From contig BQFW01000001.1 in the NCBI GenBank assembly GCA_020891255.1, positions 2,294,001-2,358,000 of the forward strand: a stretch of 64,000 nucleotides of DNA. Direction: 5' to 3'. Shown piece after piece: positions 8,878-38,642 of this stretch. How positions within the stretch are numbered: position 1 is the stretch's first letter; each line of letters begins with the position of its first letter. Source of the stretch: Entomortierella parvispora E1425. Taxonomy: Eukaryota > Fungi > Mortierellomycota. The notes beneath the pieces were generated by a model. It was not told the origin of the DNA and did not search any database. It saw only the letters and a program-made list of their open reading frames with translations. A program made the translations under genes and the position numbers.

Positions 8878-11020
8878 CTAAATAACGTAAAACTGGTCGG
8901 CCTCCTTTTCTCTTTTCCGACCACCAAAGCAGGCCCAGCCTGAGATCATCTCGTTCCATTCTTGGATAAGAGACTGCTTGAAAAACAACAAGAAGATCCA
9001 GATACCCGTCGTACTGACCAGACCCTCTGCGATCATCATCAGTATAAAGTTGGGCATGTGGCCACTTGCATACTTATCACCACACTCTTCCTGGCTACCG
9101 CCCGTAAAGATACACAGCTGCCAGGTCGACATCCAGCTCATGTCTGTCTTACTTCCCTCAACCAAATAAAAGGCCCAGTAGACCAGGATGGAACCGGAAA
9201 TGACCAGTGCCAAGACCGCGGCGCGCCACTGGATGCGGATCGCGTTCAACACGTGGCGACGATGAGAGATCCTGGCAGCACGACCCGAGGACAAAGTCGA
9301 GTGAGAAACTGTCTCGGACTTTTCAGACTGAAGAGTGATGCGGATGATGTGAGCGAAGGTAGCGATATGAAGCAGGATGGAAGGAACCATGATCACTCCA
9401 AGGGGAATGAACAGCAGAGCATTCGAAGTATCTTGCGTAGCCATACACCTAAAAAAAATAATGCGAAAAACAAAAAAGATCAGTTTCTAAGGATCAAAAT
9501 CAATGGAAAAAAAAAAGATAGCAGGCAAGACCTTACATGTTCGAGTTGTTCCAACCAATAGATTTGGTAACAACAGCAATTGCGGCAAAGGCTGCGGGAA
9601 TGATCCACCCGATGGTGTGGGACAACCAGGCGCGTCTCGCGAGCCAGCTGGAGTTCCAGACTGTATGCAAATGCAAGTTCACGATGACGAGCGACAGCCA
9701 CGCCGTGGTTGCAATGGCTCCAAAGATAAGCCAGCCTCCCTGCGCCAAGCACAGGTTGTTGTTGTACGATGTCGATGTGACAATGGCCGTGGTAGGGATA
9801 GGCTGATGGGTTGCGCACTGAACACGCTTTGGATCTCCGTAAGAGAGAGCAACAGCAGCACTGAAAATGCAAGTGGAGATAGCAGCAAACAGAATCAAGT
9901 TGCTTGGGTGCTGAAGTTTGTCTGGCAACAGAAGATAGGAGATCACCAGAATCAAGGCCAGACCTGCAGAAATACCCTTGAGAATATCTGTGATAAAGAA
10001 TCCTTTATCCAGGATTCCAGGCTTGTAAAACGCGTCAGTCTGTGGGCAGGGAAGACAGCATCCGCATCCACAGTTGGCATTGTCGGCATTCTGCAGTCCC
10101 TTGGTCGCTTGGAAGACAGTGTCGACGACAAATGGCGAGGGGCACTCAGTCATAGGCTGTGAACAAGTTATGTTGGTGCTTTGAGCTACATTCAATTGAA
10201 GTGCCAAGCAGGGTTGTATTAGCCGCAATGTCATACCCTATAGAGATTGCTCTGAAAAGCCATATATACATACGTGGGATGTAATTGCAAGACGGGTCTG
10301 GCTGGTATGGGAATGGGCCTCCAGGATACGCCCCCGTGCCTGGAATAGGTGTCGAGCAGTCAGGGAGCACCGTCATATTCTGGGGGATTACTCCATGGGA
10401 TTGGAGGAAAGCTACATCAGCTTGGCAGGTCTGGATGGCCGTCTCGCATGTTGATTTGCAGGCAAAAAGGACATTGTAACTGTTGGCTATGGGAAGAGAG
10501 TGTATTCAACAAGCTCGTGTTAGAAGGGGTGCTGGAAATGCTCGGGAATATGATCGATAGCACAACATTGGTTACTCTGTCCAGTCAGTCCAGTCGTGAC
10601 AGGGCGAGGAAAGGCGACCGAGCACCCATAGGCAAGCATGGCAGATTGGCATGGATCGGGCAATGCCATGAGGCTCTCCAGGCCTGCTGCAGCCTCGATC
10701 ATGGTTACGTTTGTACCGTCAGGAATCCAAACGTTGTAATCAATAAAACCTTGGCAATATACTCCAGTGTACGGCACCACTACAAAGAAGAAGGATCCGG
10801 ATTAGAAAAGAGAGCGATAGACAACAGGTATGAACATTAAGGTACCGCCAACAAACAAAAACGGAAGAGATGTCAGATGCGCATCTGCCATGTATCCATA
10901 GAGTAGTATATGGACGATCACGGCGGGCATCAAAACGGAGAGGCGATTGTGAGCCAATGGTGAACGGCTCGACGCGTCCAAGTCCCTGCTGGGGCTCTGA
11001 GCTGGTCTGGACCCAGCCAT
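8878..11020 (-). CDS. Frizzled/Smoothened-like (class F) 7TM receptor with N-terminal cysteine-rich domain; start approximate
   Basis: CRD-like exon VPYTGVYCQG...DPCQSAMLAYGCSVAFP; linker CPSPF...CGCGCCLPCP; TM region with HPSNLILF, CLAQGGWLIFGAIATTAWLSLVIVNLHL, SHTIGWIIP; C-terminal WQLCIFTGGSQEECG...MMIAEGLVSTTGIWIFLLF. This matches Frizzled/Fsl-type architecture. Confidence 0.85.
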
Positions 11021-13901
11021 CCACCATCCGCAAAGACACCATCACACCGGCAGACTTCCTTGCTCCATCCACATGGATACCGCAATATACCACAACTGCG
11101 ATTCTTCCGTCAATCGACGGCTGCCCACAACGTGACCCATATTTCCTATCGCCAGGCTCACATCTTTGCCCTCTGTCTTTTTCATTTTTTGATTGACTTT
11201 GTCTGACGTGCAGTTGGTGCAACCACGGCTGCATGTCGCAGAGAAGGCTCTGTTCCTGACAAGACCCACGCTGGCCAATGAACTCTACTTGCCAAATATA
11301 TGGCTCTTGCTCGCGATTGTTCTTATCCAACCAGACCCACCCGAAAGAGAGAGAGGAAGACTGAATCCCTTCGTCTTATTAGGGTGTTTGATTGCTGGGT
11401 GGGTCAACCTTCTGCGCTGCAGCCGAAATAGGTGGTGTTGGGTACCAGTCAGTGCCCTCCTCCGAACTCTTTTTTGTTTTTTGGTTTGACGGCGCGAGGA
11501 GAGTGGAGATGAAAAAAAAAAGTTTGTCCAAAGTTCACTATCTTAGGACAAGACAGCCGCTGGTTGGATGGGTGAAGGGTATTGTGGGAGAAGAAGCAAC
11601 GGCTGTCGCAGACTGAACTCAATGAAGGAGGCCAGTCCAAAGGAGAAGGGGATCCGTTCATGAATTCATTCACCCCCGCTCATTGCCATTGCTCTCATGC
11701 ACGCATGGGCGCCATCATCGGGTGATTTGGCGAATGACTTGACGTCTGAGAGTCTGTGGGAAGAATTTACCCCTCCGACAGACTGGCTGCGACCGTTGGA
11801 GTCAAAAAAGAAAATCATTTTCTGGATGGAACGGTTGCGAGATGGTGGTTCTCGTTCAATCTCCTTTGTGTCTCGGTGGACAATGAAGGGCTGGTGACGG
11901 GAAGAGGAGAGGAGGACTTACTCTGTCCAAGTGCCTCTGCTTTCTGGATTGTCGATGAGAGCAGGGTCATTGAAGCTAAGGCAGACACCAGCAGGCCTGC
12001 TGCTGTTGGCCGTGGAAAATGAGAGAAGCCACGCATGCCTCTGTTGTGATGTTCTGCTGGTTCCTGATTCGATGAAGACGGATTCTTTAGGGTAAAAAGG
12101 AGATGTAAGAGAGAAGTAGAGAGTGGAAGGATGATCGATCTGGAGGTGTTGACGAGATGGAGGATAGAAGGGAGGTAGAGGAAGAGACGGAAGAGGAGAC
12201 GAGCGACGAGGAGAAGGGGAGGGAGGAGGGAGGGAGGTACGAAGGGAGGAGATCCTGTAGAAGGGTGGACTGGGAGCTTTGCGGTGAGGTGAAGACAAAG
12301 AAGACAAAGAAGGCAGAAGAGAAACGAGAAGGAGAGACGAGCGTCGCATTGGACACTCATGAAGAGCAGAAGCAATCCAGAGCAGAACTCTGTTCCTCTC
12401 CTTCCCCTCCTTCCCTCCCTTCGCTGCCTTCCCTGTCTTCCCTCTCGACGTCCTGGCTGCACGCTCCAGGTGAGGCGGGCGCTCTGGCCTGTGTGGCTTT
12501 ACCACATACGCACGAGCTCTGGCACCGTTGAGTCGTGAGCAAGCCTGCCCCTGTCTGTAGAGTCAACCTCACCGTTTTTTCTCCACTGTGTGGTCGTGTC
12601 CCTCCCGTGCTCCATCGTCCATTCCTTATTTCGTCCAGATCGGTTGACCCTCAGTGATAAAGACAAGCATGGGCCGATTTGTTTCAAATTAACGTCTCTC
12701 AAACCACTCTACTCTCTTTTTTTCTCTCCCCATACTCTTGCAATCGCAGGCTATCTCCAGGCACCTCATAGTGAAAGTGGAGGAGAATGAACAGCCTTTC
12801 TCTCTCTCTTGTTGTTGCTTCTGTGTCTTGTGGAGAGAAAACCCAGTTCCTGGAGTCAACACATGAAAATCATGTCAACAGAGCTCGCCTTCCCCAATGC
12901 TTTTGCGGGCTTGCCTTGGAAGGGCTGGGTCGCACGAACACTGAACGAAGCAGACGACAGTGCACAAAGAACTGATCATTGACAGGGTACCACCTGCCAT
13001 CCTTTTTGCAGTCATCCTTCCATTTTGTTGATTGGGTATACCGCTCTGTTGTTCTTGACCACAAAAAGGATCGAAAGTAGTGAGAATCAGGCAAGCTCAG
13101 AGGAATTGCTCAAGCGCGCGCCCAAACGTTGATATCGTCTTGGGCACTTTTTTTTTTGCATGATTATTGTTGCAAGTTTGGACAAACAAGAGCTCTTTCG
13201 GCATTGAAACAGTCATCAATGCCGAGAAAGCAATGATGGTAGTCCTTGTTACACACAACCGTTGTCCAACGATTTTAATTGTTTTTTTTATTTGTATTGC
13301 CCGGACGATTGTTTTGTTTCCTTCTTTGATATTGGGTTGTACAAAGCTATCCTGGTCCCAGATGATATTCATTTTTGACTTTCTTCAAGAATGTGATGCC
13401 CAAGGTTGTTCCTCCCAGGATGACCATGACCGACTTCAAAGCTCAGAGAACGACAGCGACAACGACGGATGCTCGAGAATGCTGAAAGATACAAAAGGAA
13501 AAACTCGAGTGCGCGACGCTTATTTTCTTCTGATGGGCACTACGTAGTGAGGATGGGTTGGAAGTTGCAATGATTCCAAAACTACTTGCGGAAAAACAAA
13601 TGAGCTCTTCCGAGCAGGGCTCCGCTCCTTTTCGGTTTCTACAAATCGCGGCTGGACTTCTTTGCGCTCCCCTCCTGTCCCTGTGCCACCGAATGGCCAA
13701 CCCTCTCGCGGAGATTGGATTGGCAATTGAACCTGCCAGCCATGGCCCTCGCTCTCAGATTCTTGGACCAGTGCTCTTCCCATCAGCAGTGTTTTGGTTG
13801 GACTAGACTGATAAAAAGGACAGGATCCCCTCACTGACTGAAAGAATGTCGTGCACCAAATGGGAAAGTCAGCACGAGAGGGCGAGCAAAAGGGCTCACT
13901 C

Positions 13902-13932
<31 letters not shown>

Positions 13933-14825
13933 GGAGCTATCGATTGTCAATCCTCTCCCTACAAGAACAATTTGAAGGCCCAAATCACTTTAAAGTGAAA
14001 AAGAGTGAGAACAGGCCAACGCGTCAGAACCATCGTCTAGACTACGGCGCAAGGAAAGACGCCTAGAGATCAACCTTATCTTTTGGGACAGGTGGACATT
14101 AAAAAGACTTCGCAGGGCCGCACAGCACTAGGCGCGGACTTGCTGTAGCATCAATCCGCGGGTGCCAGCGACAAGGTCAAAGGTGGGGGACATGTTTGAA
14201 GATTCAAGTCAACATGCAAAATTTCTGTGCCGAGAACCCAAGACTCTTATTACGGTTCCTGGTCTGTGCAACATATTCTTGGAGATATGTGCCACGAACA
14301 CAGATGGTCACCGGGAAAATGAATTAAAGCTGAGGCAAACTATTGCTGCAGACTGCACTTGTTGGATTCAAGAAGTGAGAAAAGGAGTCGCGTCTCTGTG
14401 CCGGCTGGGATGTAACCATTCTTGAATGGATGTGCGTTGGTGCCTTGTGCAGTGCAGATACAATAAAACCCCACTGTTAGGGGATATATCGTGCCTGAGC
14501 AACAGGGCCTTACAAAAAGGGCCAGAACTTTCATACTGATCGATATGTAGTCGGCTACAACACGCTACGTAGCACTAGATGGCACGGAGGAAACCATACG
14601 TGCTTCCAGGCGTGCTTCCAGACGTGATCCACTCTGACCAACTTGCAAAGCCTACTCCCGACCATGAGTCAACAATTCCTATCACCCGAGATGACCCTCT
14701 TGAGTAGTAAACAGTGATAAGCATGAATATCATACAAGGCATTACTTCCTACATAAACATCCACCTTCAACTTAAGCGATATCAGTCTCCTTAACATTAC
14801 AAAATCGTAAACTGCGAAAACTTCC

Positions 14826-14856
<31 letters not shown>

Positions 14857-15330
14857 CGACAGCAACATCTTGGCCGCAATGATCGATCGCACCCGAAAAC
14901 AATCTGGTCGATCCCGAATGATACTATGTGGTCGAATACTTCATCCTTATTTCCTTATTCGCAGCGTGTCAAAACGCACCTTTGAACTCTTCCGCGACCG
15001 TTTTGACACTCGTTCCACAAGAATCCAGAAACCTCCAGATATGATCAATGGTTCGTTTTCAAGTTTCTTTGCTTTATGTCATTCCACTTGTCCTGACGTA
15101 TAACAAACGAAGAACTTGGTTATTATTGAAACAAATCCTTGAGCCACCGTGAAAGGTTTGACCAAGCATTTCGACTCGAAGAGGGCCGCCTAAAACAGCA
15201 ACAATCGATGAAATACAAATAAGTGGTTGCAACGCCAAAATGGGCACCGTGGCGAGGTCCATCGGTGCAACAAATGAAGGTCCTACAGCTAATACGTGAT
15301 TTAGCGGATCGACGGAGCCTGCGAGTGATC

Positions 15331-17845
15331 CTATTTAACTGCACAGAAACATCGTGTTAGTTCCAGTCTTGCCATTGTCGTCTCTTCATCGTGTGAGCAA
15401 TTGGTAAAAATGACTTACTTGCTGATGCTGATGAAGTAGAACGGAAACACCGGTGAGAAGGATACATCAGTTGCCATCTTGAGGCTCTCATGGCTTCGTT
15501 CCTACAAGCAATTGGCAAAAATGACTTACGGGGGCTGATGAAGTAGTACGAAAACACCAGTGAGAGAGATACAGGTGACCACATTAGTAGCCATTTAACG
15601 ACTGCCATGGCGTTGTCGTTACGAGCAATTGGTAAAAATGACTTACTCGCTGATGAAGTAGAACGAAGCACCGGTGAGTGAGATACAGGTGGCCCCGTTA
15701 GTAGCCCTCTTGCGACTGCCACGGCTTCATTCTGACAAGCAATTGGTTAAAGTGACTTACAAACTGATGAAGTAGAACGAAAACATCGGTGAGTGAGTTA
15801 TAAGTAACCACATTGGTAGCCTTCTTGCGACTCTCATAGCTTGGTTGTTACAAGCAATTGGTAAATGTGACTTACCAGCTGATGAGGTAGAATGAAAACA
15901 CAGGTGAGGGGGATGGAGGTGACCACATTAGTAGCTATCTCGCGACTACCTTGGCGTTGTCGTAACGAACAACTGGTGAAATGTCTTACCCGCTAATGAA
16001 GTAGAACGAAACATCGGTGAATGAGATATAGGTGACAACATCAGTTGCCATCCTGCGACTGTCATGGCGTTGTCGTAACGAACAATTGGTGAAAGTGACG
16101 TGACTTACGCCCTGATAAGTAGAACGAACACACCGGTGAGAGAGATACAGGTGACCACGTTAGTATCCATCTTTTGGCTGCCATGGCGTTGTCGTTACGA
16201 ACAATTGGCGGAAGTGACTTACTTGCTGATGAAGTAGAACGAAAAACCGAGTGAGAAACCGGCGGACACATTAGTTGCCTTCTTGTGGCTGTCATGGCGT
16301 TGTCGTTACAAGCAATCGGTAAAAATAACTTACATGCTGATGAAGTAGAAGGAAAACACCGGCGAGAGGGATATAGGTTGTCACATCAGTTGCCATATTG
16401 CGATTGATATAGCGTTGTCGTAGAGCAATTGGTAAAAATAACTTACATGCTTATGAAGTAGTACGAAAACACCAGTGAGAGAGATACAGGTGACCACATT
16501 AGTGGCCATTTTACGACTGCCATGACGTTGTCATTACGAGCAATCGGTGAAAGTGTCTTACCCGCTGACGAAGTAAAACGAAAACATCGGTGAGTGAGAA
16601 ATCAACGGACACATTAGTTGCCTTCCTGTGGCTGTCATGGCGTTTTCGTTGCGAACAATGGTAAAAATGACTTACAGGCTGATGAAGTAGAACGAAAACA
16701 CCGGCGAGAGGGATATAGGTTGTCACATCAGTTGCCATATTGCGATTGATATAGCGTTGTCGTAGAGCAATTGGTAAAAATGACTTACATGCTTATGAAG
16801 TAGTACGAAAACACCAGTGAGAGAGATACAGGTGACCACATTAGTAGCCATTTAACGACTGCCATGGCGTTGTCGTTACGAGCAATTGGTAAAAATGACT
16901 TACTCGCTGATGAAGTAGAACGAAAGCACCGGTGAGTGAGATACAGGTGGCCACGTTAGTAGCCCTCTTGCGACTGCCATGGCTTCGTTCTGACAAGCAA
17001 TTGGTGAAAGTGACTTACAAACTGATGAAGTAGAACGAAAACATCGGTGAGTGAGTTATAAGTAACCACATTGGTAGCCCTCTTGCGACTCTCATAGCTT
17101 GGTTGTTACAAGCAATTGGTAAATGTGACTTACCCGCTAATAAAGTAGAGTGAAAATACCGGCGAGTGAGAAACCAGCGAGCACATTAGTTGTCATCTCG
17201 TGGCTGTCTTGACGTTGTCGTTACGAGCAATTGGTAAAAGTGACTTACCAGCTGATTAAGTAGAACGAACACACCGGTGAGATAGATAGAGGTGACCACA
17301 TTAGTAACCATCTTGGCACTCTCATAGCTTCGTCGTTACAAGGGTAGACTTACCGTCTGATGAAACAAATGAAGGAAAGAGAGACAGGGGTAGAATGTAA
17401 GCTTATATCCAGATAGTGCTGTATATTATCTTTACCAAGGCCTACTTCTCTCTGAGTGCACAGATCATTATCAAGGAGATGGTGTTAATCAACCATGTTA
17501 GCGTCAGTTTTGTGTTTTGTCTTCGCTGTCATAGCGACAATGAAAACTGACTCGTCGATTGATATGTCGCGAAAGAATAAAGAGCTATACGGGCTGCGAG
17601 TGCTTTCTCAAAACTGCCATCGTTGAGGAATGCAGCACTTCTGACTTACCCAGTAATCGAGTGGATCGGATAATACCAGACGGGAAAACCTCAGATTGTT
17701 AAATACAAACGTCGCTAAGGCGATAACCGCTGCTCACCAAGACGCCCGAGGTCTTTTTGCTTTGTCATTCTGTTAAAACTTACACAGGGGCAGCGACAGT
17801 GAAGCCTAGAAAGGCAACAAGGACAAGGAGGAACTGGATCTTCAT
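15331..17845 (-). CDS. Micro-exon gene (21 exons) encoding a 43-aa secreted prepropeptide MKIQFLLVLVAFLGFTVAAPVEKRCGFDILGIIKAGCFDPPIK
   Basis: Exons in transcript order: 17845-17784 (signal peptide, ends CCT GT|GTAAGT); 17451-17446 AGAGAA; 17356-54 ACG; 17251-49 CTG; 17136-34 CGG; 17021-19 TTT; 16906-04 CGA; 16791-89 CAT; 16678-76 CCT; 16564-62 CGG; 16449-47 CAT; 16336-34 CAT; 16225-23 CAA; 16111-09 GGC; 15992-90 CGG; 15878-76 CTG; 15763-61 TTT; 15649-47 CGA; 15534-30 CCCCC; 15421-19 CAA; 15338-15331 TTAAATAG. The total is 132 nt (43 codons + TAG) with no internal stop. Every internal exon is flanked by AG and GT. Confidence 0.85.
15339..17359 (-). repeat. Tandem array of ~114-bp units (17 full units plus a partial one); each unit is one spliceosomal intron plus one micro-exon
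   Basis: Minus-strand consensus GTAAGTCATTTTTACCAATTGCTCGTAACGACAACGCCATGGCAGTCGCAAGATGGCTACTAATGTGGTCACCTGTATCTCTCTCACCGGTGTTTTCGTTCTACTTCATCAG-NNN. Period is 105-119 bp. Across the 18 micro-exons, donors are GTAAGT (16) or GTAAGA (2) and acceptors are CAG (14), TAG (2) or AAG (2); a CTAAT/CTGAT branch-like motif occurs in most units. Confidence 0.97.
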
Positions 17846-18737
17846 TTGGGAGTAATGTGGAGAAGATAGAAGGTGAGGGGTGGAGGTAAAGGTGTAAGTC
17901 GAGCGATGGTTCTTGTCTGGCAAGGAAGACTGTGGCTTTTTGAGGAAGGAACCTCTGTTCAAGGGGCGCATCAAGGGGCATTGCTCTCTCCTATCTTTTG
18001 GGTGGATGCAGATTTCAAGAAAGTGGGGCTCTGCCCATTTCGGCAGCAACATTTTTCCAAAAGGAAAAAAAAAAGTTCTCAGCTGCCGGGCTTGGAGTGA
18101 AGACGATGTAGGACGACTGGCAATTGAGGGCGCAGTTGTGTTGTTTCTTCATCGGTCCGCATTGCTACTTTCCGAGATTAGCACTGTCCCTCGAGCTCCT
18201 TTCCCTCTTCTTCAATTGGTCGTCCCCCGCACCAAAAATGATATTTCAGCGGCGATTGTGCCTTGGCCACGACGCCTGCTGGTTGTACCTGGGAGGAAGC
18301 GGGTCTGTATATGTTTCAAACACCAATATTATAGCCCTCCCCCCCCCCCCCAAAATGCTTGCCCACTCAGACCGCTTTTTGAGCTGATAGGACCCACGGT
18401 CTTCCCTCCGCGACAGGCCCCGGAAATTCAGGACCAAGTATCAAGAGCGCAGGGGGAAAAAGGGGCATGATCAACAAGAACGGAGTCCCCTGTTGTCAAG
18501 TAGCAGGTAGGTCCGCTGATCAGTCATCTGAATGAACTTTATGTTTCTTTCGTTCTTTGACTGGGTCATGTTGGGGTATGGAAAAAAACCGAGAACAAAG
18601 CAGCAACCCGCAGGCTTGATGACCCGAGGGATCCACGCGATGATAAGGATAAGCTACAGAAAGAGGATATAAGGTTTCTCTCCTGGAAACTTGAAAACAT
18701 TGCATGATCGGCTTTGATATCCTTAGTTCTATCTTGA

Positions 18738-19511
18738 ATGTCTTTCCTACCACATCGCCTCACCGCTTCCCTGTGGGATTGCCAAAGTTCGATCCAATCT
18801 TGGTGTGGACGCTTGCCGCAAGTTTGTCGATAGCGAGGACTTTTATACCCTCCCTGTTCCGATCGATTCCAACACAGGCGCCAAAGTCGGGGATTCGTTT
18901 GATATCACCGCCTATTTGCAATCCCAATATCCGACCGCGGGATCTGGCCCCTACAAACACCCGACTTTGTCTATCAACCAGAAACTCTCATCCTGGTCCC
19001 TCTCTCTGTTGAGAGAGAGGGTAAATATGAAGATTACGCTCGATTCAACACCAGTGTCGATGCCGCCTTCACCATTCATATCTCTATCTGTGCCTTTAAG
19101 CTCCCCTTTGATCCTGCCACCGAGGAAGCCAGCAGGGCCCAATTCGTTCAACGCGCCAGCGCCTATGGTATCACATCTTTTGATCAGTTCGAGGTCAAGG
19201 GGGAGGCGCGCGAAAAGGTCAAGGAATCGCTCCGTCTCATGCTGGGTGACCTTGGCAGGCTCTATTTGAGGGACCCTAGCGGGCCCTTCTTGTTGGGTCA
19301 GCAGGCCAGTTACGCCGATCTCATCGTCGGTGGATGGCTTCGAATGATGAAGGTCACTCTTCCAGAGAATGAGTGGGAGGAAGTCAGCAGCTGGCATGGA
19401 GGACTCTTTGGACGTTTGTACGATGGTCTGGAGAAGTTTATGGAGGTCAAGTGGGAGGATAGGCCGAGCTGCTGCAATGATCCATGCATCGCCCAAACCA
19501 AAATAAAATGA
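18738..19511 (+). pseudogene. Intronless GST-like gene (UstS-like/GST_N_3 fungal family), frameshifted and apparently with an N-terminal deletion
   Basis: One frame reads IAKVRSNLGVDACRKFVDSEDFYTLPVPIDSNTGAKVGDSFDITAYLQSQYP (GST N-domain TLP...GDSFDI). A different frame continues ILVPLS...YARFNTSVDAAFT...FDPATEE...GPFLLGQQASYADLIVGGWLRMMKVTLPENEWEEVSSWHGGLFGRLYDGLEKFMEVK. No intron signals explain the shift. Confidence 0.75.
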
Positions 19512-19895
19512 TGAGAGCCGTTGCTTCGCCCGTTTTTGTTCAACGACTTCCCCTGCTGAAGGCCATTTTAAAATAAACGAGATCGTGCCGCGATGTTGCA
19601 TTAAAAAACACGGGCTGTGCTCTCGTGTCATTGCACGCGAGTGCTGATTCGCTTGAAGGAGGCTCCGTCTGGTCAATTCATAGACCTTTGTTCCCTTGTT
19701 CTTTGATAGCTGTTGAATGGGTGCGTGCACTCCCTTGATAGCCCTTGAGGAGTGCATCCAGCCAGCTGAACTCGTTGAGGGGTGGATTCGACTGAGGGTA
19801 TGATCGTCGATTCTTAAGGGGTCCATATGTGATTCATTTATATACATCGCTCGGGCTTGGCTTTTTTCGTCACTCTTTCGCCTTTTCTCTCCTTC

Positions 19896-20695
19896 ATGGT
19901 AGACCTGACTGGTAAGTGCCTCTCCTTGAACAACATACACTCTCACCTTTGCTCCTCTCTGTCGTTTCGTTCTTGTATGCCCTTGCCTTGCTTCATAACC
20001 ACCATTCCTTTCAGCCTGTCTCTCTTTTTTTTTTTTGCTATTCTCATGCTTCAATGACCACGTTTCATTTCAACATTGTCTCTCACGCGTCATTTCGACT
20101 GCGCCCGCCAGCTCAGTGTTGACATTGACTCATTTCTCTCTATTCCTTGTATGTACTTTTCATCAAAAATAGTGATTGCCTCGGTCCTGGCCTTAGTCCA
20201 TCAGTCTTTGACATGCATGGCGCACATTGCCGGGGGGTTCATATGGTAAGTTGTAGCTTCTCTTGCGTTCGTGTTTGTTGCCTTGTGAGTGTGTTGACTG
20301 GTCTTCTTTCGTGTGTTCTCACAAGTCTCTTCTCTTCATCTTCTTCTTGAGTACTCTGCAGACCCTCCCTCATCCCGCCTGCCTCTGTTAGGCTGCGCCG
20401 CTTCCTCGTCGTTTCCAGTTTACAAGTTAAGTGTGTGTGTGGGTGTGTCTCTCTCTTGCTCTTCCATCCCAATCTTTCTTTCATCTCTCCATCGGATGCA
20501 GGTCTGGTGGGAGCTTGAAGAGGTTTTTCGTATTTCTGGCCCTGGCAACAAGAGAGGAAACGTGATTTACGGCTTGAAACCCAACTGCCGCCTTCTGAAT
20601 ACAGAACCCAGCTGGTGGACATGGTTTTGTATCCCATTATGGTCATGCAAATGGCTATCGACCCCGTGTGCTCGTCAACACCTTTGCCTTTGGGT
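19896..20695 (+). other. Possible multi-exon hypothetical gene or spliced transcript
   Basis: GTAAGT donors at 19912 and 20246 and AG acceptors at 20171-72 and 20390-91 give an open spliced frame MVDLTVIASVLALVHQSLTCMAHIAGGFIWLRRFLVVSSLQ...; no family recognised. Confidence 0.25.
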
Positions 20696-22724
20696 AAACG
20701 GCACCGTGTCGAGCACACTGCCCTGAGTATCGCTTGCGTTGCTCTTGGTAACACCTCCTTGTGGCTGTCATGTGAATAGGTATGTCGTTTGGGGGCCTTG
20801 CCGTTTTGGTGTTAATAACAAGGAGTTGAGGAGGCCTGAGGCGACTTCTTTGGAACCACCCTCAGTGTATTCGACCCGTGCTGTCTCTTTGTCCCGTATT
20901 TAGCTTGCTACTTGATGGTTGATCGGCTTCAGCACAAGGACCATTGATGATCATTTTCCAGCTCAGCTCCATTTGACTCTCCTTGGTCGAGCCAGGCCGC
21001 AAGGCTAGGCAATTCCATTTTAGCCCACGTTTGCACTCTCAAACCTGAACGTGGGCTAACCTCCGTATTCTGTCAGCCCTTTTCTAGCACTGGATTACCG
21101 TGCTGGGAACCGTTGCGCAGATATGGTTTCGCGATTTTCGCGGCTTGACACTCCTGCTGGTTCACTCCAGTCCCTTCAACAGGGTTCTTTTTTCAAATCC
21201 TGGGTGGTTCAGATGGCTGAGCTCTGGCAACAGAAATCGGTGGTTTGTTCTGTCTAGGTGGACCGTCGTCTTTCCGCTGGGAGTTTGGGATGTGAAACGT
21301 GGTCTTTTTAACCCTAGATCGTGAAAGCGCCTTCCCCCTGGGATAGGAAGTGTGTGATCTAGAAACCCAGCAATTCCGTGTCATCCCTTTTGGTGCTTTC
21401 TGCAGATTTCGAAATGCGGGCTTTTGAGTTGTAGATGTGAATCTGTCTTTTGTTTTTCCGGGACCAGAAGTGATGAAGTAGTGAGATTCCTCTGGCATTG
21501 ATTTTACGTCCATCCTGTTGCCGGGAGGTGCAACGTGGTCTTTGTCTTTGATTGAGTTGGGAAAGTGTGGAGCAAGAGCAACAACTGTCTAAATGCTTGC
21601 TTCTTGACTGATGATTGACTTTGTACTATGGACTACTCACCTCTTCATACATTTTGGACAGGGACTCTCTGGGCGGTTGCTGGGTCTTCTTGATCTGGTG
21701 GCCATGACAATGCACACAGTTGGCTGAGGCGGAGGAGGTTAGGGATGGCGGGTGGGTCTTCCTTTCGCTCTCAGCGGGATCTTTTGGCACAAGCAAGAAT
21801 ATCGCAACGAGAAAACCATGTACTGAAGCAGGATCTCCAGCAGACCTCGCACCAAATTATCGCCAAGGCAGATCGAGCACGAAAGCCGTACCAGAACAGA
21901 TTGCGCACTGAGCAGGCTCCCAGCAGACCGCCAAAAGCCGAATCCAGCAAACAGATACTCCAGGTAGAGTCCATTTCCGATCCTGAAATGTTTCTTGTCT
22001 TCTCGTCGTGGCCACTCTGCACGTACCTTGGACCAGGATAATACCCTGAAAACTCAGACGCAGCCGTCATTTGCGAGATCTCCCTTCTGGCATCCATTGG
22101 ATCCTCTTGATCCAGACTATGTTTCATGGCGCAAGTCCTTGCTGCTCTTCCATTCCTTTCGACATTCTGAACTGCGAAATCTAATCAACACGGAATAAAA
22201 CATGTTTACCCATACAGACTTCTAGTGTTTTTTTTCATTCACTTTGGTCCGCGATGATCACGATCATCCAGTTTGTTGGGGTGCTGTGAATAACTTGTTG
22301 TCTCTCTTGAAAAGAAGGGTAGGCAAATGGCCAAGAAGAGACCGAGATTCATTGATTTGTTTCCAACGCCACGGAAGAGGCGAGTTGTCGTGAGCGTGCG
22401 GAATCAGAATTCAAGAAAGAGTCAGAGTCAGAGGACAAGAACAAAGGTCCTACCAACATTATGATCCTCTTTTGGACAAGGACTCGGGCAAAGAGACAAA
22501 GGGAAATTCCACCTTCACACCAAAGAAAACGACTGGCGCCTGATTGACTCATCGTGCAAGCACATTCTTTATTCATTTTTTTTTAGAAAACTTATGGTCC
22601 TTTGTGGCCCGACCGATAAATAATGTTCATCGTCTTTTGTTCCAGGGTCAAAAAAAGTTTCTGTCCTCCTGAACTGTTCTTGCTTGTGGTGTGGTTGTTT
22701 GTTGTCGCTGCTGTTTTTACATAT

Positions 22725-35911: not shown

Positions 35912-38642
35912 TCATGAGCGACGCGCATTCTGCAAAAGAATGGGGTCATTTCTCGAAGGCAGAGGAGGTGGGGGGACCGGACGGTTCTGGGTCTGGCGCA
36001 TGGGAGGAGGAGGAGGCACGGCCAATGCAGTCACGACATGGTCTTGCGATCGGTTCAGAGGTTGAGGATGTTTGATGGTGTACTGAGAGTTGTTCGCAGA
36101 CCCGTTGGCATTTGAATATTTTCGGGTCGCTGCCCAGGCTCGGATCTGATCACGCTTGCGGTAGCAAACAACGGCGCTGATAACAATAGCCACAAAAATG
36201 GACCCGATAACAATGAGGATGATCTGCCAGACCTCCATACCGTTGAGAATGGGGGGAAGATCGGGGCGACCGGCCGCAATGGCCACATAGGGTGGCGAGT
36301 CTTTTGAAGTCATGACCTGGTAGGCTATCAGGCCATTGAATGGTGCGTTATAATCCAGAGCAACCTAGCAACATAAATAAGCGAAAGCAAGGGGATGCCA
36401 TCCTGTCAGCAAAAAAAACCAGATCGAAACGGTCGCCTTTGCTTACCGCAATCATAACCACCCCCACCAAACACACAAAAATCAAAAACTGTACCTCACT
36501 TTGTCTCCAGTCACTTCGACGGTCTTCGAAGCGATCGTTCTTGTCGGGTCCACCAACAAGGGCTCCGTAGATGGTGTACTTCTCCTTAGCGGGGTAGGAA
36601 TCAAGGGTGCCAGGGTCATCTCCGCCGGAAGCCGGGGCCGAGTGAGGGTTGATGGGAGAATTGGGGTGCACACCGACAACGTAGGGGGTCTTTTCAGGAT
36701 TATCTCCTAGCAAATAGTTGATCTGACCCAAAGCAAACGCCTGGTACTCCGATACTTTCTCCTGAATCGTGGCATTGCCGTTGCTGTTGCTCTCCATCTG
36801 GGTGGACAACAGCATGAGGCCGAACGCAGCGTTTGCCGAGACAACTGAAGTGTCATCCCCCGAGTTTCCGTTGCAGAAGTAGAGACCGCCCTTGGTGAAC
36901 ATGCAGGGCTTAGGAGCATTTTTTGTAAAATCGGCAAACTGCTCCGAGAGGCTTTGCCACTTTGAGTAAGCACTCGTTCCATTGGTCAAGCTTGCCATCA
37001 AGATGTAAACGAAGCCTGTCTTGTCGTCCCAGGTAACGGGGTTGGTCTGGATTCCCTGGGAGTTCTCAGAGTCAATATACACACCGGCTTTCTGGGCATA
37101 GATTGGGTTCTTGGTCAAACTGTATAGCCAGGCAGCACCCCAAGCCAGTTCATCTACAAACCCAGAAGACGCGTAGCAGCAGGAGGCAGCTGGGACAACG
37201 GTCTGGTACACCTGCTGTGGCGTGGCTGTCTCTGCAAGGTTATAAAGGACCTCGGCGTGGGTCTGGAGAGTAGTGGCATATGTAGCGTTGTTTAGCTTGT
37301 CACGGTACAACTGAGAGCAGGCAGAAAAGGCTGCGGAGGCATCGGCCATGACATCCGTTCCCGGGCTGGTCCTGTTCACCTGGAATGAAGCACGGGGTCC
37401 AGGGATAGTCGTATCGGGCCCCCAATAGTTGTTATCGATATCGCTGGTGCCGACTTGAACCCAGAGCGTGTCGTTGTTGGAGTGGGCTTTCATCAGCCAG
37501 TCCATACCCCAACGAACCATCTGGTCCAAATACTGAGTTTGGTTGGCAAGCTCGTAGCCTTCAAAGTAGGTAAGACCGCCCCAGCATGTTTCTGCAAGTG
37601 TAAACGTGAGAGGAAAAATGAACTTGAGATAATCTCCAGCATCGTAGTAGCCCTGAAGAAAAAGAAAAAAAAAGTCATTGCAGGGCAAGAGTCAGTTCAC
37701 GGCGAGGACCAATTGTGTTTGATGTGCCCACGATTGAGTTCCACTTACCCCTGTCAGATCAACACCGACATCGCTGCCATCGGTCATGGCAGAGTTATTG
37801 CGCTAGTAAACACAGAAAACAGGTCCAGAATAAGTTTAACGAGAAAATGGCAATTTTGTCCCTGTGGCCACTAGGTTAACTTCGCTATTCCTGTCTTGAA
37901 AACGACAGCCAAGAACTTATAAACATGGCAAGGATATTTCTTTTTCCATGCGGGAACTGACCCTACTGGTGCTAAAAGAACAATGACTTACCCAAGTAAC
38001 GCGTTGATTCGGTGGGAGTTTGCCCGAACGCTGAGCCTCGTAGAACAATAAGGAGTAGTCGAGCAACCTAAACGCCACATGCACGAAGCAGAAGGTCAGA
38101 GAGGTACTTGCAGAAGAATCGGCTTAATCTTTATCCTCGTCGCGTACAATAGCCGCCAGCAGTAATCAAATTTGTCTTTTGATCAGAACATTCCACGGAC
38201 TGGGAGTGGCGATCGTTCTACCGGTCGTACCGATCCCTTTTTTGTTAACGGCGAGGGGGGACGATAGTAGTGGTAATGGGGGACGATAGTGGTGGCAATG
38301 AGTAGGGGGGGGGGGGGACTGGACAACCTACTTGACGTATTCGGAATCTGGGAACGAAGGGCTCGTTACGTTGTCCCGGGGCTCGTCAGGGAAGACGGGT
38401 GGCGCCCCTGAACCTGCATTAAATGTGGGCGATGGCGCAGGCGGTTTTGGAGCAACGGTGGTCGTGGCGGGGGGAGGAGGAGGTACTGCAGTGGGAATGG
38501 CTGCGGCTGAGCTCGTGGCGGGGACTGGTGTGGGCGAGGGAGGCGGGGCAGAGGGCGATTCCTGGGCACCGGCGGTGTTTGAGCAGAGGGTTGCAACAAG
38601 GGCCACAGCGGCCCATATTGAGGTAGAGGTCGGTATCTTCAT
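35912..38642 (-). CDS. Glycoside hydrolase family 9 endoglucanase with signal peptide, Pro/Thr-rich N-terminal linker and C-terminal TM anchor
   Basis: Signal [26 protein letters not shown]; GH9 motifs [17 protein letters not shown]|[11 protein letters not shown] and [25 protein letters not shown]|ALDYNAP; [28 protein letters not shown]. Confidence 0.93.

Follow-up and report, generated by a model that had tools for sequence, protein, structure and literature searches.

The gene described here lies on the minus strand at positions 15331–17845 of a 64,000-nucleotide (nt) stretch of the Entomortierella parvispora E1425 genome (contig BQFW01000001.1, positions 2,294,001 to 2,358,000), which is referred to below as the window. 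On balance, its sequence suggests that it is genuine and belongs to a lineage-specific family, at least 11 genes strong, that encodes small secreted peptides and in which the mature region would be written at about one codon per exon. It is likely that this is a real secreted-peptide gene, read in the frame proposed in the initial annotation of the locus. The two-cysteine core as written there, give or take a Ser-Ala and the terminal Lys, is favoured less strongly, and the exact 19-residue peptide (19-mer) that it took to be released by Kex2 is unlikely.

Anatomy of the micro-exon array

The anatomy of the gene, its family, its pattern of conservation and its reading frame were read directly from the DNA. 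The coordinates and strand of the initial annotation were correct, and re-joining its exons gave exactly the same translation. On the minus strand, exon 1, AGAGAA, 16 three-base exons, CCCCC, CAA and TTAAATAG join to encode MKIQFLLVLVAFLGFTVAAPVEKR-CGFDILGIIKAGCFDPPIK, a precursor of 43 residues ending in CGFDILGIIKAGCFDPPIK and the stop codon TAG at 15333–15331.

Most of the gene is occupied by an array of 18 micro-exons (15419–17356), separated by 17 introns of 102–116 nt. The introns form a tandem repeat with donors and acceptors, for which Tandem Repeats Finder gives a period of 115 nt, 16.4 copies and a higher-order period of 342 nt. The gap between consecutive units is exactly 3 nt in 16 cases and 5 nt (CCCCC) in one. 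In order from the 5′ end, the micro-exons are ACG (17356–17354), CTG (17251–17249), CGG (17136–17134), TTT (17021–17019), CGA (16906–16904), CAT (16791–16789), CCT (16678–16676), CGG (16564–16562), CAT (16449–16447), CAT (16336–16334), CAA (16225–16223), GGC (16111–16109), CGG (15992–15990), CTG (15878–15876), TTT (15763–15761), CGA (15649–15647) and CCCCC (15534–15530). The last is either CAA (15421–15419) or CATCAGCAA (15427–15419), depending on which of two CAG acceptors, 6 nt apart, is used. The array is followed by a last intron of 80 nt (15339–15418), which reads GTAAGT...AACTAAC...GTGCAG.

The splice signals of the array are highly conserved. There are 16 GTAAGT and two GTAAGA donors, and the acceptors comprise 14 CAG, two TAG and two AAG. 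Each array intron contains a branch motif (ACTAAY, ACTGAT or ACCAAT), followed by a pyrimidine-rich tail of about 49 nt that is free of AG. Across the 18 array introns, none of the 126 GTAAG and AG positions is changed, against a consensus mismatch of 13.9% at other intron positions (P ~1e-8). The introns also resemble an ordinary intron of a neighbouring G protein-coupled receptor (GPCR) gene, which has a GTAAGG donor, an ACTGAT motif and a 37-nt U-rich tail.

The opposite pattern is seen in the exons. The two bases before the donor have a diversity (pi) of 0.74 and 0.73, compared with an intron mean of 0.22, and rank first and second of the 115 columns of the unit; in six other arrays of the family the same two bases rank between 1 and 4. 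When the micro-exons are read in phase 2, these hypervariable bases are codon positions 1 and 2. Recent duplications of three-unit blocks can be recognised, in which the introns are 96–99% identical and the micro-exon bases differ. Between duplicated blocks CGG is replaced by CTG, which changes Gly to Cys, and CGA-CAT-CCT is matched with CGG-CAT-CAT, which gives Asp-Ile-Leu in one block and Gly-Ile-Ile in the other. The predicted peptide is therefore internally repeated, with CGFD and GCFD, and DIL and GII, as counterparts. The terminal exon, with TT at the place of the paralogues' C, has one extra base that offsets the extra two bases of CCCCC and keeps the Lys-stop frame.

Exon 1 (17784–17845, 62 nt) contains the ATG and encodes the putative signal peptide MKIQFLLVLVAFLGFTVAAP, followed by GT in phase 2 and a GTAAGT donor at 17783. 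It specifies an N-terminal Lys, a hydrophobic stretch of 11 residues and then TVAAP, and these are kept in ten paralogues. The putative signal peptide of the initial annotation has n, h and c regions that are conserved in 11 loci, but the cleavage proposed there, VAA/P, would place Pro at +1. Cleavage at TVA/AP is more likely, by analogy with yeast prepro-alpha-factor, which is cleaved at ALA/APV. Upstream of exon 1, the 5′ flank and 5′ untranslated region (17846–17960) are homologous to the promoter-proximal region of the paralogues, and an alignment of the 260 nt upstream of the ATG contains a block GACCATCGCTTGATCCACACCTTTCC...CCATC common to eight family members.

Exon 1 is followed by an intron of 332 nt (17452–17783), in which local alignments to a typical unit reveal decayed repeat units. 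It contains an internal GTAAGT at 17649 and a candidate for a cryptic 40-nt exon at 17689–17650. Between this intron and the array lies AGAGAA (17446–17451), a candidate exon of 6 nt that is optional and in frame either way, together with an 89-nt intron (17357–17445) that has a weak GTAGGC donor, a branch-like CTTAC and a CAG acceptor. At the other end of the gene, the coding part of the terminal exon begins with TTAAATAG (15331–15338), which is read as (A)TT AAA TAG, or Ile-Lys-stop, and its 3′ untranslated region continues below 15331. This exon is homologous to the terminal exon of the paralogues, C AAA (AAA) TAG, and to their 3′ flank. A poly(A) run of 28 nt is present at 14826–14853 of the window, about 480 nt downstream of the stop codon; in paralogues, long homopolymers of T or G occur in the 3′ flank about as far away.

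A family of arrays in the same genome

At least ten other loci share this design, with a signal-peptide exon of 62 nt, 3-nt exons chained in the same phase and, in many cases, a last exon that encodes Lys-stop. When the whole genome was searched for a pattern of two 3-nt exons spaced by a single intron, 114 matches were obtained (12 with the reversed control), and these group into about a dozen arrays. Upstream of every array that was fetched there is an exon of 62 nt that encodes MK[IFL]x[FY]..VLVAFLG..AAP, again in the same phase, and the length and phase of exon 1 are identical in all 11 of the family loci examined. A BLAST search with exon 1 found seven other loci in the genome, at 80–87% DNA identity.

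The gene in the window has each of the family features. Its exon 1 is exactly 62 nt long, encodes MK..(F/Y)L.VLVAFLG..AAP and meets a GTAAG donor in phase 2; 16 of its 18 array exons are 3 nt long and are separated by tandem introns of about 105–115 nt; and its terminal exon gives Lys-stop, in line with the Lys(-Lys)-stop of the family, and has a homologous 3′ flank. Read in phase 2, this gene and four paralogues share a homologous terminal exon that gives Lys-stop. The paralogues are then predicted to encode short secreted peptides, for example ...APTDALTAAVSADAIIATKK, ...APTILDLTAIDIDLKK and ...APADPPAGDLGLPSGPSGPSDSK. The largest member seen is L040 (G000:C13:1842501-1850500, minus strand), which has 48–49 consecutive micro-exons, 47 of them of 3 nt. 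Its predicted product has 72 residues, with PGD(D)RCYPTY repeats and five Cys, and ends in KK-stop.

Some features of individual arrays are worth adding. In L026 (G000:C8:3055001-3065000, minus strand) the micro-exons themselves spell an in-frame stop, CAA ATA A.. (Lys-stop), past which there are units with weaker donors (GTAGGT) and one unit with a GTAAAT donor; this looks like an array with a partly decayed 3′ end. In the arrays L025, L027, L040 and L041 (on C8 and C13) the donor tends to be GTACGT after micro-exons such as CGA, CGG or CAA, and GTAAG after ones such as CCC, CCT or CTG, with exceptions in L041. A further locus, L022 (G000:C1:772001-778500, minus strand; array at C1:775146-775396), is an unrelated gene for a small secreted Cys-rich peptide, with the predicted product MVSRTF...AVPLQGKLEKR followed by ECHAGLCSNGYTAYCEPYC. 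Its canonical LEKR lies within an ordinary exon, and the gene has three near-identical introns of 120 nt split by GGT micro-exons (Gly-Gly-Gly, phase 0), with GAGATTTGA as its terminal part.

Weighing of the predicted peptide and its alternatives

A number of observations count against the interpretation of this locus as a working gene for a Kex2-released peptide. Some of them concern the array and its frame. The first 427 nt past exon 1 consist of decayed units, one of which has no acceptor and another neither site; the 5′ end of the array is decayed. The TATA-like TTTAAATACC of the paralogues reads TCAAAAAGCC here, and the motif is thus not kept. Two of the CAT exons rest on AAG acceptors, and their skipping would remove one Ile each, in frame. 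An open frame carries no proof on its own, because about 79% of the family micro-exons begin with C and all three phases are open. C is found at micro-exon position 1 in 79% of junctions, whereas the normal frequency of C at third codon positions is 33%, so the excess may stem from the −3 position of the donor consensus and not from codon use. A comparison of codon adaptation in the three phases gives weak support for the frame (0.75, against 0.69 and 0.62).

Further points concern the ends of the peptide and its release. The 19-mer requires the second of the tandem CAG acceptors (15424–15422); the first (15430–15428) is the acceptor homologous to those of all other units, and its use would give a 21-mer ending ...CFDPPSAIK. 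The donor that follows AGAGAA, GTAGGC, combines G at +4 with C at +6, a combination found in no other family intron (other GTAGG donors of the family have T or A at +6), and the only branch-like motif in the 89-nt intron is the weak CTTAC. In none of the ten paralogues is the signal peptide followed by a dibasic site, and KR is absent there.

Database searches add to these points. The spliced 43-residue precursor gave no scoring match among 5.8 billion proteins, and a degenerate back-translation of GFDILGIIKAGC gave no matches among metagenome contigs. A look-up of sequencing runs with positions 13000–22000 of the window listed no RNA run; an RNA-seq set for E. parvispora E1425, DRA013164, is reported in PMC8759367. 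Orthologues of the neighbouring GPCR gene, 70–75% identical to it, are present in Gamsiella, Dissophora, Linnemannia and other Mortierellaceae, which assigns the genome to this family; no array was found beside the orthologous gene in the three named genera. The array is thus not conserved across species at this position, a comparison that says little, since gene order is rearranged in all three. A degenerate pattern search for exon 1 returned only seven chance matches, all bacterial, and an open reading frame that runs through three intron units (15357–15722) matched nothing in either protein library. The peptide itself had no matches among Pfam and PDB sequences.

The alternative that survives best keeps the same gene and frame and treats AGAGAA as part of the intron. 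Exon 1 would then be joined to ACG over a 427-nt intron, giving ...AAPV-R-CGFD..., and there would be no Kex2 step; the product would be APVRCGFDILGIIKAGCFDPP(SA)IK, or else a form produced by cleavage at the single Arg. All ten paralogues pass directly from exon 1 to the micro-exon chain without KR, and R-C junctions without a preceding Lys recur in L040 (DDRC, ERC). The frame is kept when AGAGAA is skipped, the sequence across the junction becoming V-R-C, and the weakness of GTAGGC and CTTAC in the 89-nt intron favours this reading. The acceptor side points the other way. A good CTAAC branch site lies about 45 nt upstream of the CAG at 17454–17452, with no other AG in between, and this CAG should for that reason be used; its use without the GTAGGC donor would bring the message to an in-frame TAG.

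The micro-exon that follows also bears on this choice. ACG is the only micro-exon of the array that begins with A, and when AGAGAA is included its A completes a Lys codon (the predicted junction of exon 1, AGAGAA and ACG is GTAGAGAAACGC), whereas without AGAGAA the same A is synonymous. Only ACG and GGC begin with a purine here; both follow AA and both make Lys, which is one of 136 possible placements. In a family-wide test, the tendency for purine-initial micro-exons to follow split codon boxes was a trend only (odds ratio 1.9, P = 0.08). Taken together, we consider that AGAGAA is probably included, given that the gene works at all, and that its omission from a working gene of the same frame is a possible but rather doubtful outcome.

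The E-K-R pro-segment of the initial annotation therefore stands as V-E-K-R across the junctions if AGAGAA is spliced in, and falls with the weak donor if it is not. Kex2 processing is plausible in the same conditional sense: VEKR looks canonical, and kexin P-domain genes are present in the genome (PF01483 matches on contig C4, 98.5 and 64.7 bits), but the site depends on one weak exon. The two-cysteine sequence of the 19-mer was reproduced, with Cys at positions 1 and 13 as claimed and a computed net charge of 0, in line with the near-neutral charge originally given; its length holds only if the second CAG acceptor is used. The proposed amphipathic core did not survive, in that the helical hydrophobic moment of GFDILGIIKAG is 0.28, a value reached by 45% of shuffles of the same residues. 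With neither a net positive charge nor a high hydrophobic moment, the peptide does not belong to the cationic amphipathic antimicrobial class, and the suggested likeness to peptides such as aurein is lost. At the level of the DNA, the family anatomy and the conservation of splice sites give good support to a small secreted precursor whose mature region has two cysteines. As an observation, the initial annotation is thus borne out in part, with the exact mature form and the Kex2 site as its unsecured elements.

A less probable alternative, which we regard as unlikely, is that the locus is a duplicate that is decaying or not expressed, amounting to a satellite of intron units from which no peptide is made. 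The missing RNA run, the decay of the first three or so units, the two AAG acceptors, the 5-nt exon, the doubled acceptor and the degenerate TATA-like motif all speak for such a copy, and the paralogues L028 and L026 clearly carry broken units. Against it, donor, branch site and acceptor are retained in 18 of 18 introns, which given the divergence elsewhere has a probability of about 1e-8, and the frameshift of the 5-nt exon is compensated in the terminal exon.

It is very unlikely that the cryptic 40-nt exon (17689–17650) is included, which would shift the array to phase 0 and yield an Arg/His-rich peptide (...RETLRFRHPRHHQGRLFRPPN) in place of the two-cysteine peptide. All of the signals for it are present, namely an AG 9 nt after TTTAAC and the GTAAGT donor at 17649; the reading frame stays open, and TTAAC branch motifs occur in other family introns. 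However, the AG has no pyrimidine tract and lies only 9 nt from the branch site, whereas introns here have tails of 37–49 nt. The resulting frame loses the Lys-stop ending of the family and contradicts the phase-2 design of all paralogues, and its codon adaptation index is slightly lower (0.74 versus 0.80). Finally, the introns themselves could be what the locus is for, as in a host gene for small RNAs, with the tiny exons irrelevant. The repeated introns and negligible exons recall small nucleolar RNA host genes, but this idea is rejected as extremely improbable: Rfam gave no match at E<=1, a consensus structure is lacking (−1.4 kcal/mol, 3 pairs), single-unit fold z-scores are inconsistent (−2.4, 0.1, 1.5 and −0.6), and the conserved signal-peptide exon, fixed phase and hypervariable dinucleotide would be left unexplained.

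Proposed route, neighbourhood and known systems

For the two-cysteine peptide of the phase-2 frame, we infer a route that runs from transcription and splicing, through each processing step and the disulfide, to function. Transcription would begin upstream of the ATG at 17845, at a distance of about 100 nt. Nineteen or twenty short introns of ordinary appearance would be removed sequentially, each step adding 3 nt to a growing exon; sequential removal would be needed because a 3-nt exon is too small for two spliceosomes at once. The resulting mRNA would encode a precursor of 41–45 residues, whose signal peptide would be cut in the endoplasmic reticulum, most likely at TVA/AP. With AGAGAA included, the VEKR site would be cut by kexin in the Golgi. 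A Kex1-type carboxypeptidase may remove the C-terminal Lys, which is found family-wide, and the two cysteines, 12 residues apart, would close a disulfide loop. The secreted product would thus be CGFDILGIIKAGCFDPP(SA)I(K), acting outside the cell. The hypervariability of the family makes biotic interaction or signalling a likelier role than housekeeping, and we propose that the product is an extracellular, disulfide-looped interaction or signalling peptide that would not be membrane-lytic.

For two of the 11 arrays, a GPCR gene is located no more than about 6 kb away. The array in the window adjoins a Frizzled/secretin-like GPCR (8878–10234, minus strand; PF01534 and PF00002), and a neighbouring array at C1:2288-2290 kb adjoins a class C GPCR (G000:C1:2283106-2283698). 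No gene of these two GPCR classes was found near the other nine arrays, which shows that a pairing of ligand and receptor is not family-wide. Elsewhere in the window, a long single-exon open reading frame at 36348–37688 (minus strand) gives a full-length match to glycosyl hydrolase family 9 (E 4.6e-95), a family that is uncommon in fungi. No enzyme of the type that modifies ribosomally synthesised and post-translationally modified peptides (RiPPs) was seen near the locus.

A literature search for arrays of single-codon or 3-nt exons, and for fungal micro-exon genes, found nothing relevant. Our view is evenly balanced as to whether the whole of the following holds as a gene design not found described: each residue is a separately duplicable cassette of a codon and its own intron; arrays of up to about 49 exons of 3 nt are spliced stepwise; evolution proceeds by duplication of units or blocks together with changes at two bases per unit; and the outcome is a fast-evolving disulfide-looped signal or defence peptide, perhaps matched to the GPCR gene 5 kb away. 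If spliced as predicted, this would be an extreme micro-exon gene and a test case for how the spliceosome deals with runs of 3-nt exons, and the peptide would evolve residue by residue through duplicated units of intron plus codon. The family would also represent a hidden class of small secreted peptides of the Mortierellaceae, missed by standard annotation and by read mappers. Mortierellaceae have interactions with bacteria, nematodes and insects. In practical terms, the locus yields a small set of defined peptide forms (18–25 residues, one disulfide) for mass spectrometry and synthesis.

The micro-exon genes (MEGs) of Schistosoma are the nearest described system. They likewise have a signal peptide in a normal first exon, many short symmetric exons and small, secreted, fast-evolving products, and form lineage-specific families. 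MEG exons are 6–36 nt long and their introns mutually unrelated, whereas here the predicted exons are of 3 nt, the introns are tandem copies of a unit of about 112 nt, and the genes belong to a fungus.

The predicted product resembles the Kex2-processed fungal precursors (alpha-factor, killer toxins, KEPs and Ustilago Rep1) in a putative signal peptide, a candidate pro-segment that is short and ends in aliphatic-Glu-Lys-Arg, a mature peptide of small size, the presence of kexin genes and a C-terminal basic residue that could be trimmed by a Kex1-type enzyme. It differs in that there is a single core with at most one KR, in place of the several KR-flanked core repeats of KEPs, that the KR hangs on a candidate exon of 6 nt, and that the paralogues have no KR. 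Repeated cores, as in RiPPs of the dikaritin type (ustiloxin-like), are absent too, and no match to UstYa/DUF3328 (PF11807) was found in the genome by a search in which the control genomes were silent as well. Amphibian antimicrobial peptides of the aurein type share a short G-(L)-F-D-I-type motif with the peptide, but no homology to them was detected, and the peptide has no net charge, a low hydrophobic moment and, by inference, a bounding disulfide.

In its splicing, the array is reminiscent of the ratchet sites of recursive splicing in long animal introns, where a 3′ splice site stands almost directly before a 5′ splice site (here CAG|NNN|GTAAGT) and removal is stepwise. The classical ratchet site is an exon of zero length within one long intron, whereas here three coding bases would be kept at each step and the introns are short. 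In its repeated introns, it recalls introner-like elements and intron duplication in fungi, in which near-identical spliceosomal introns have multiplied within one genome; here the copies are not dispersed among unrelated genes, but stand head-to-tail in one gene, each with its own codon.

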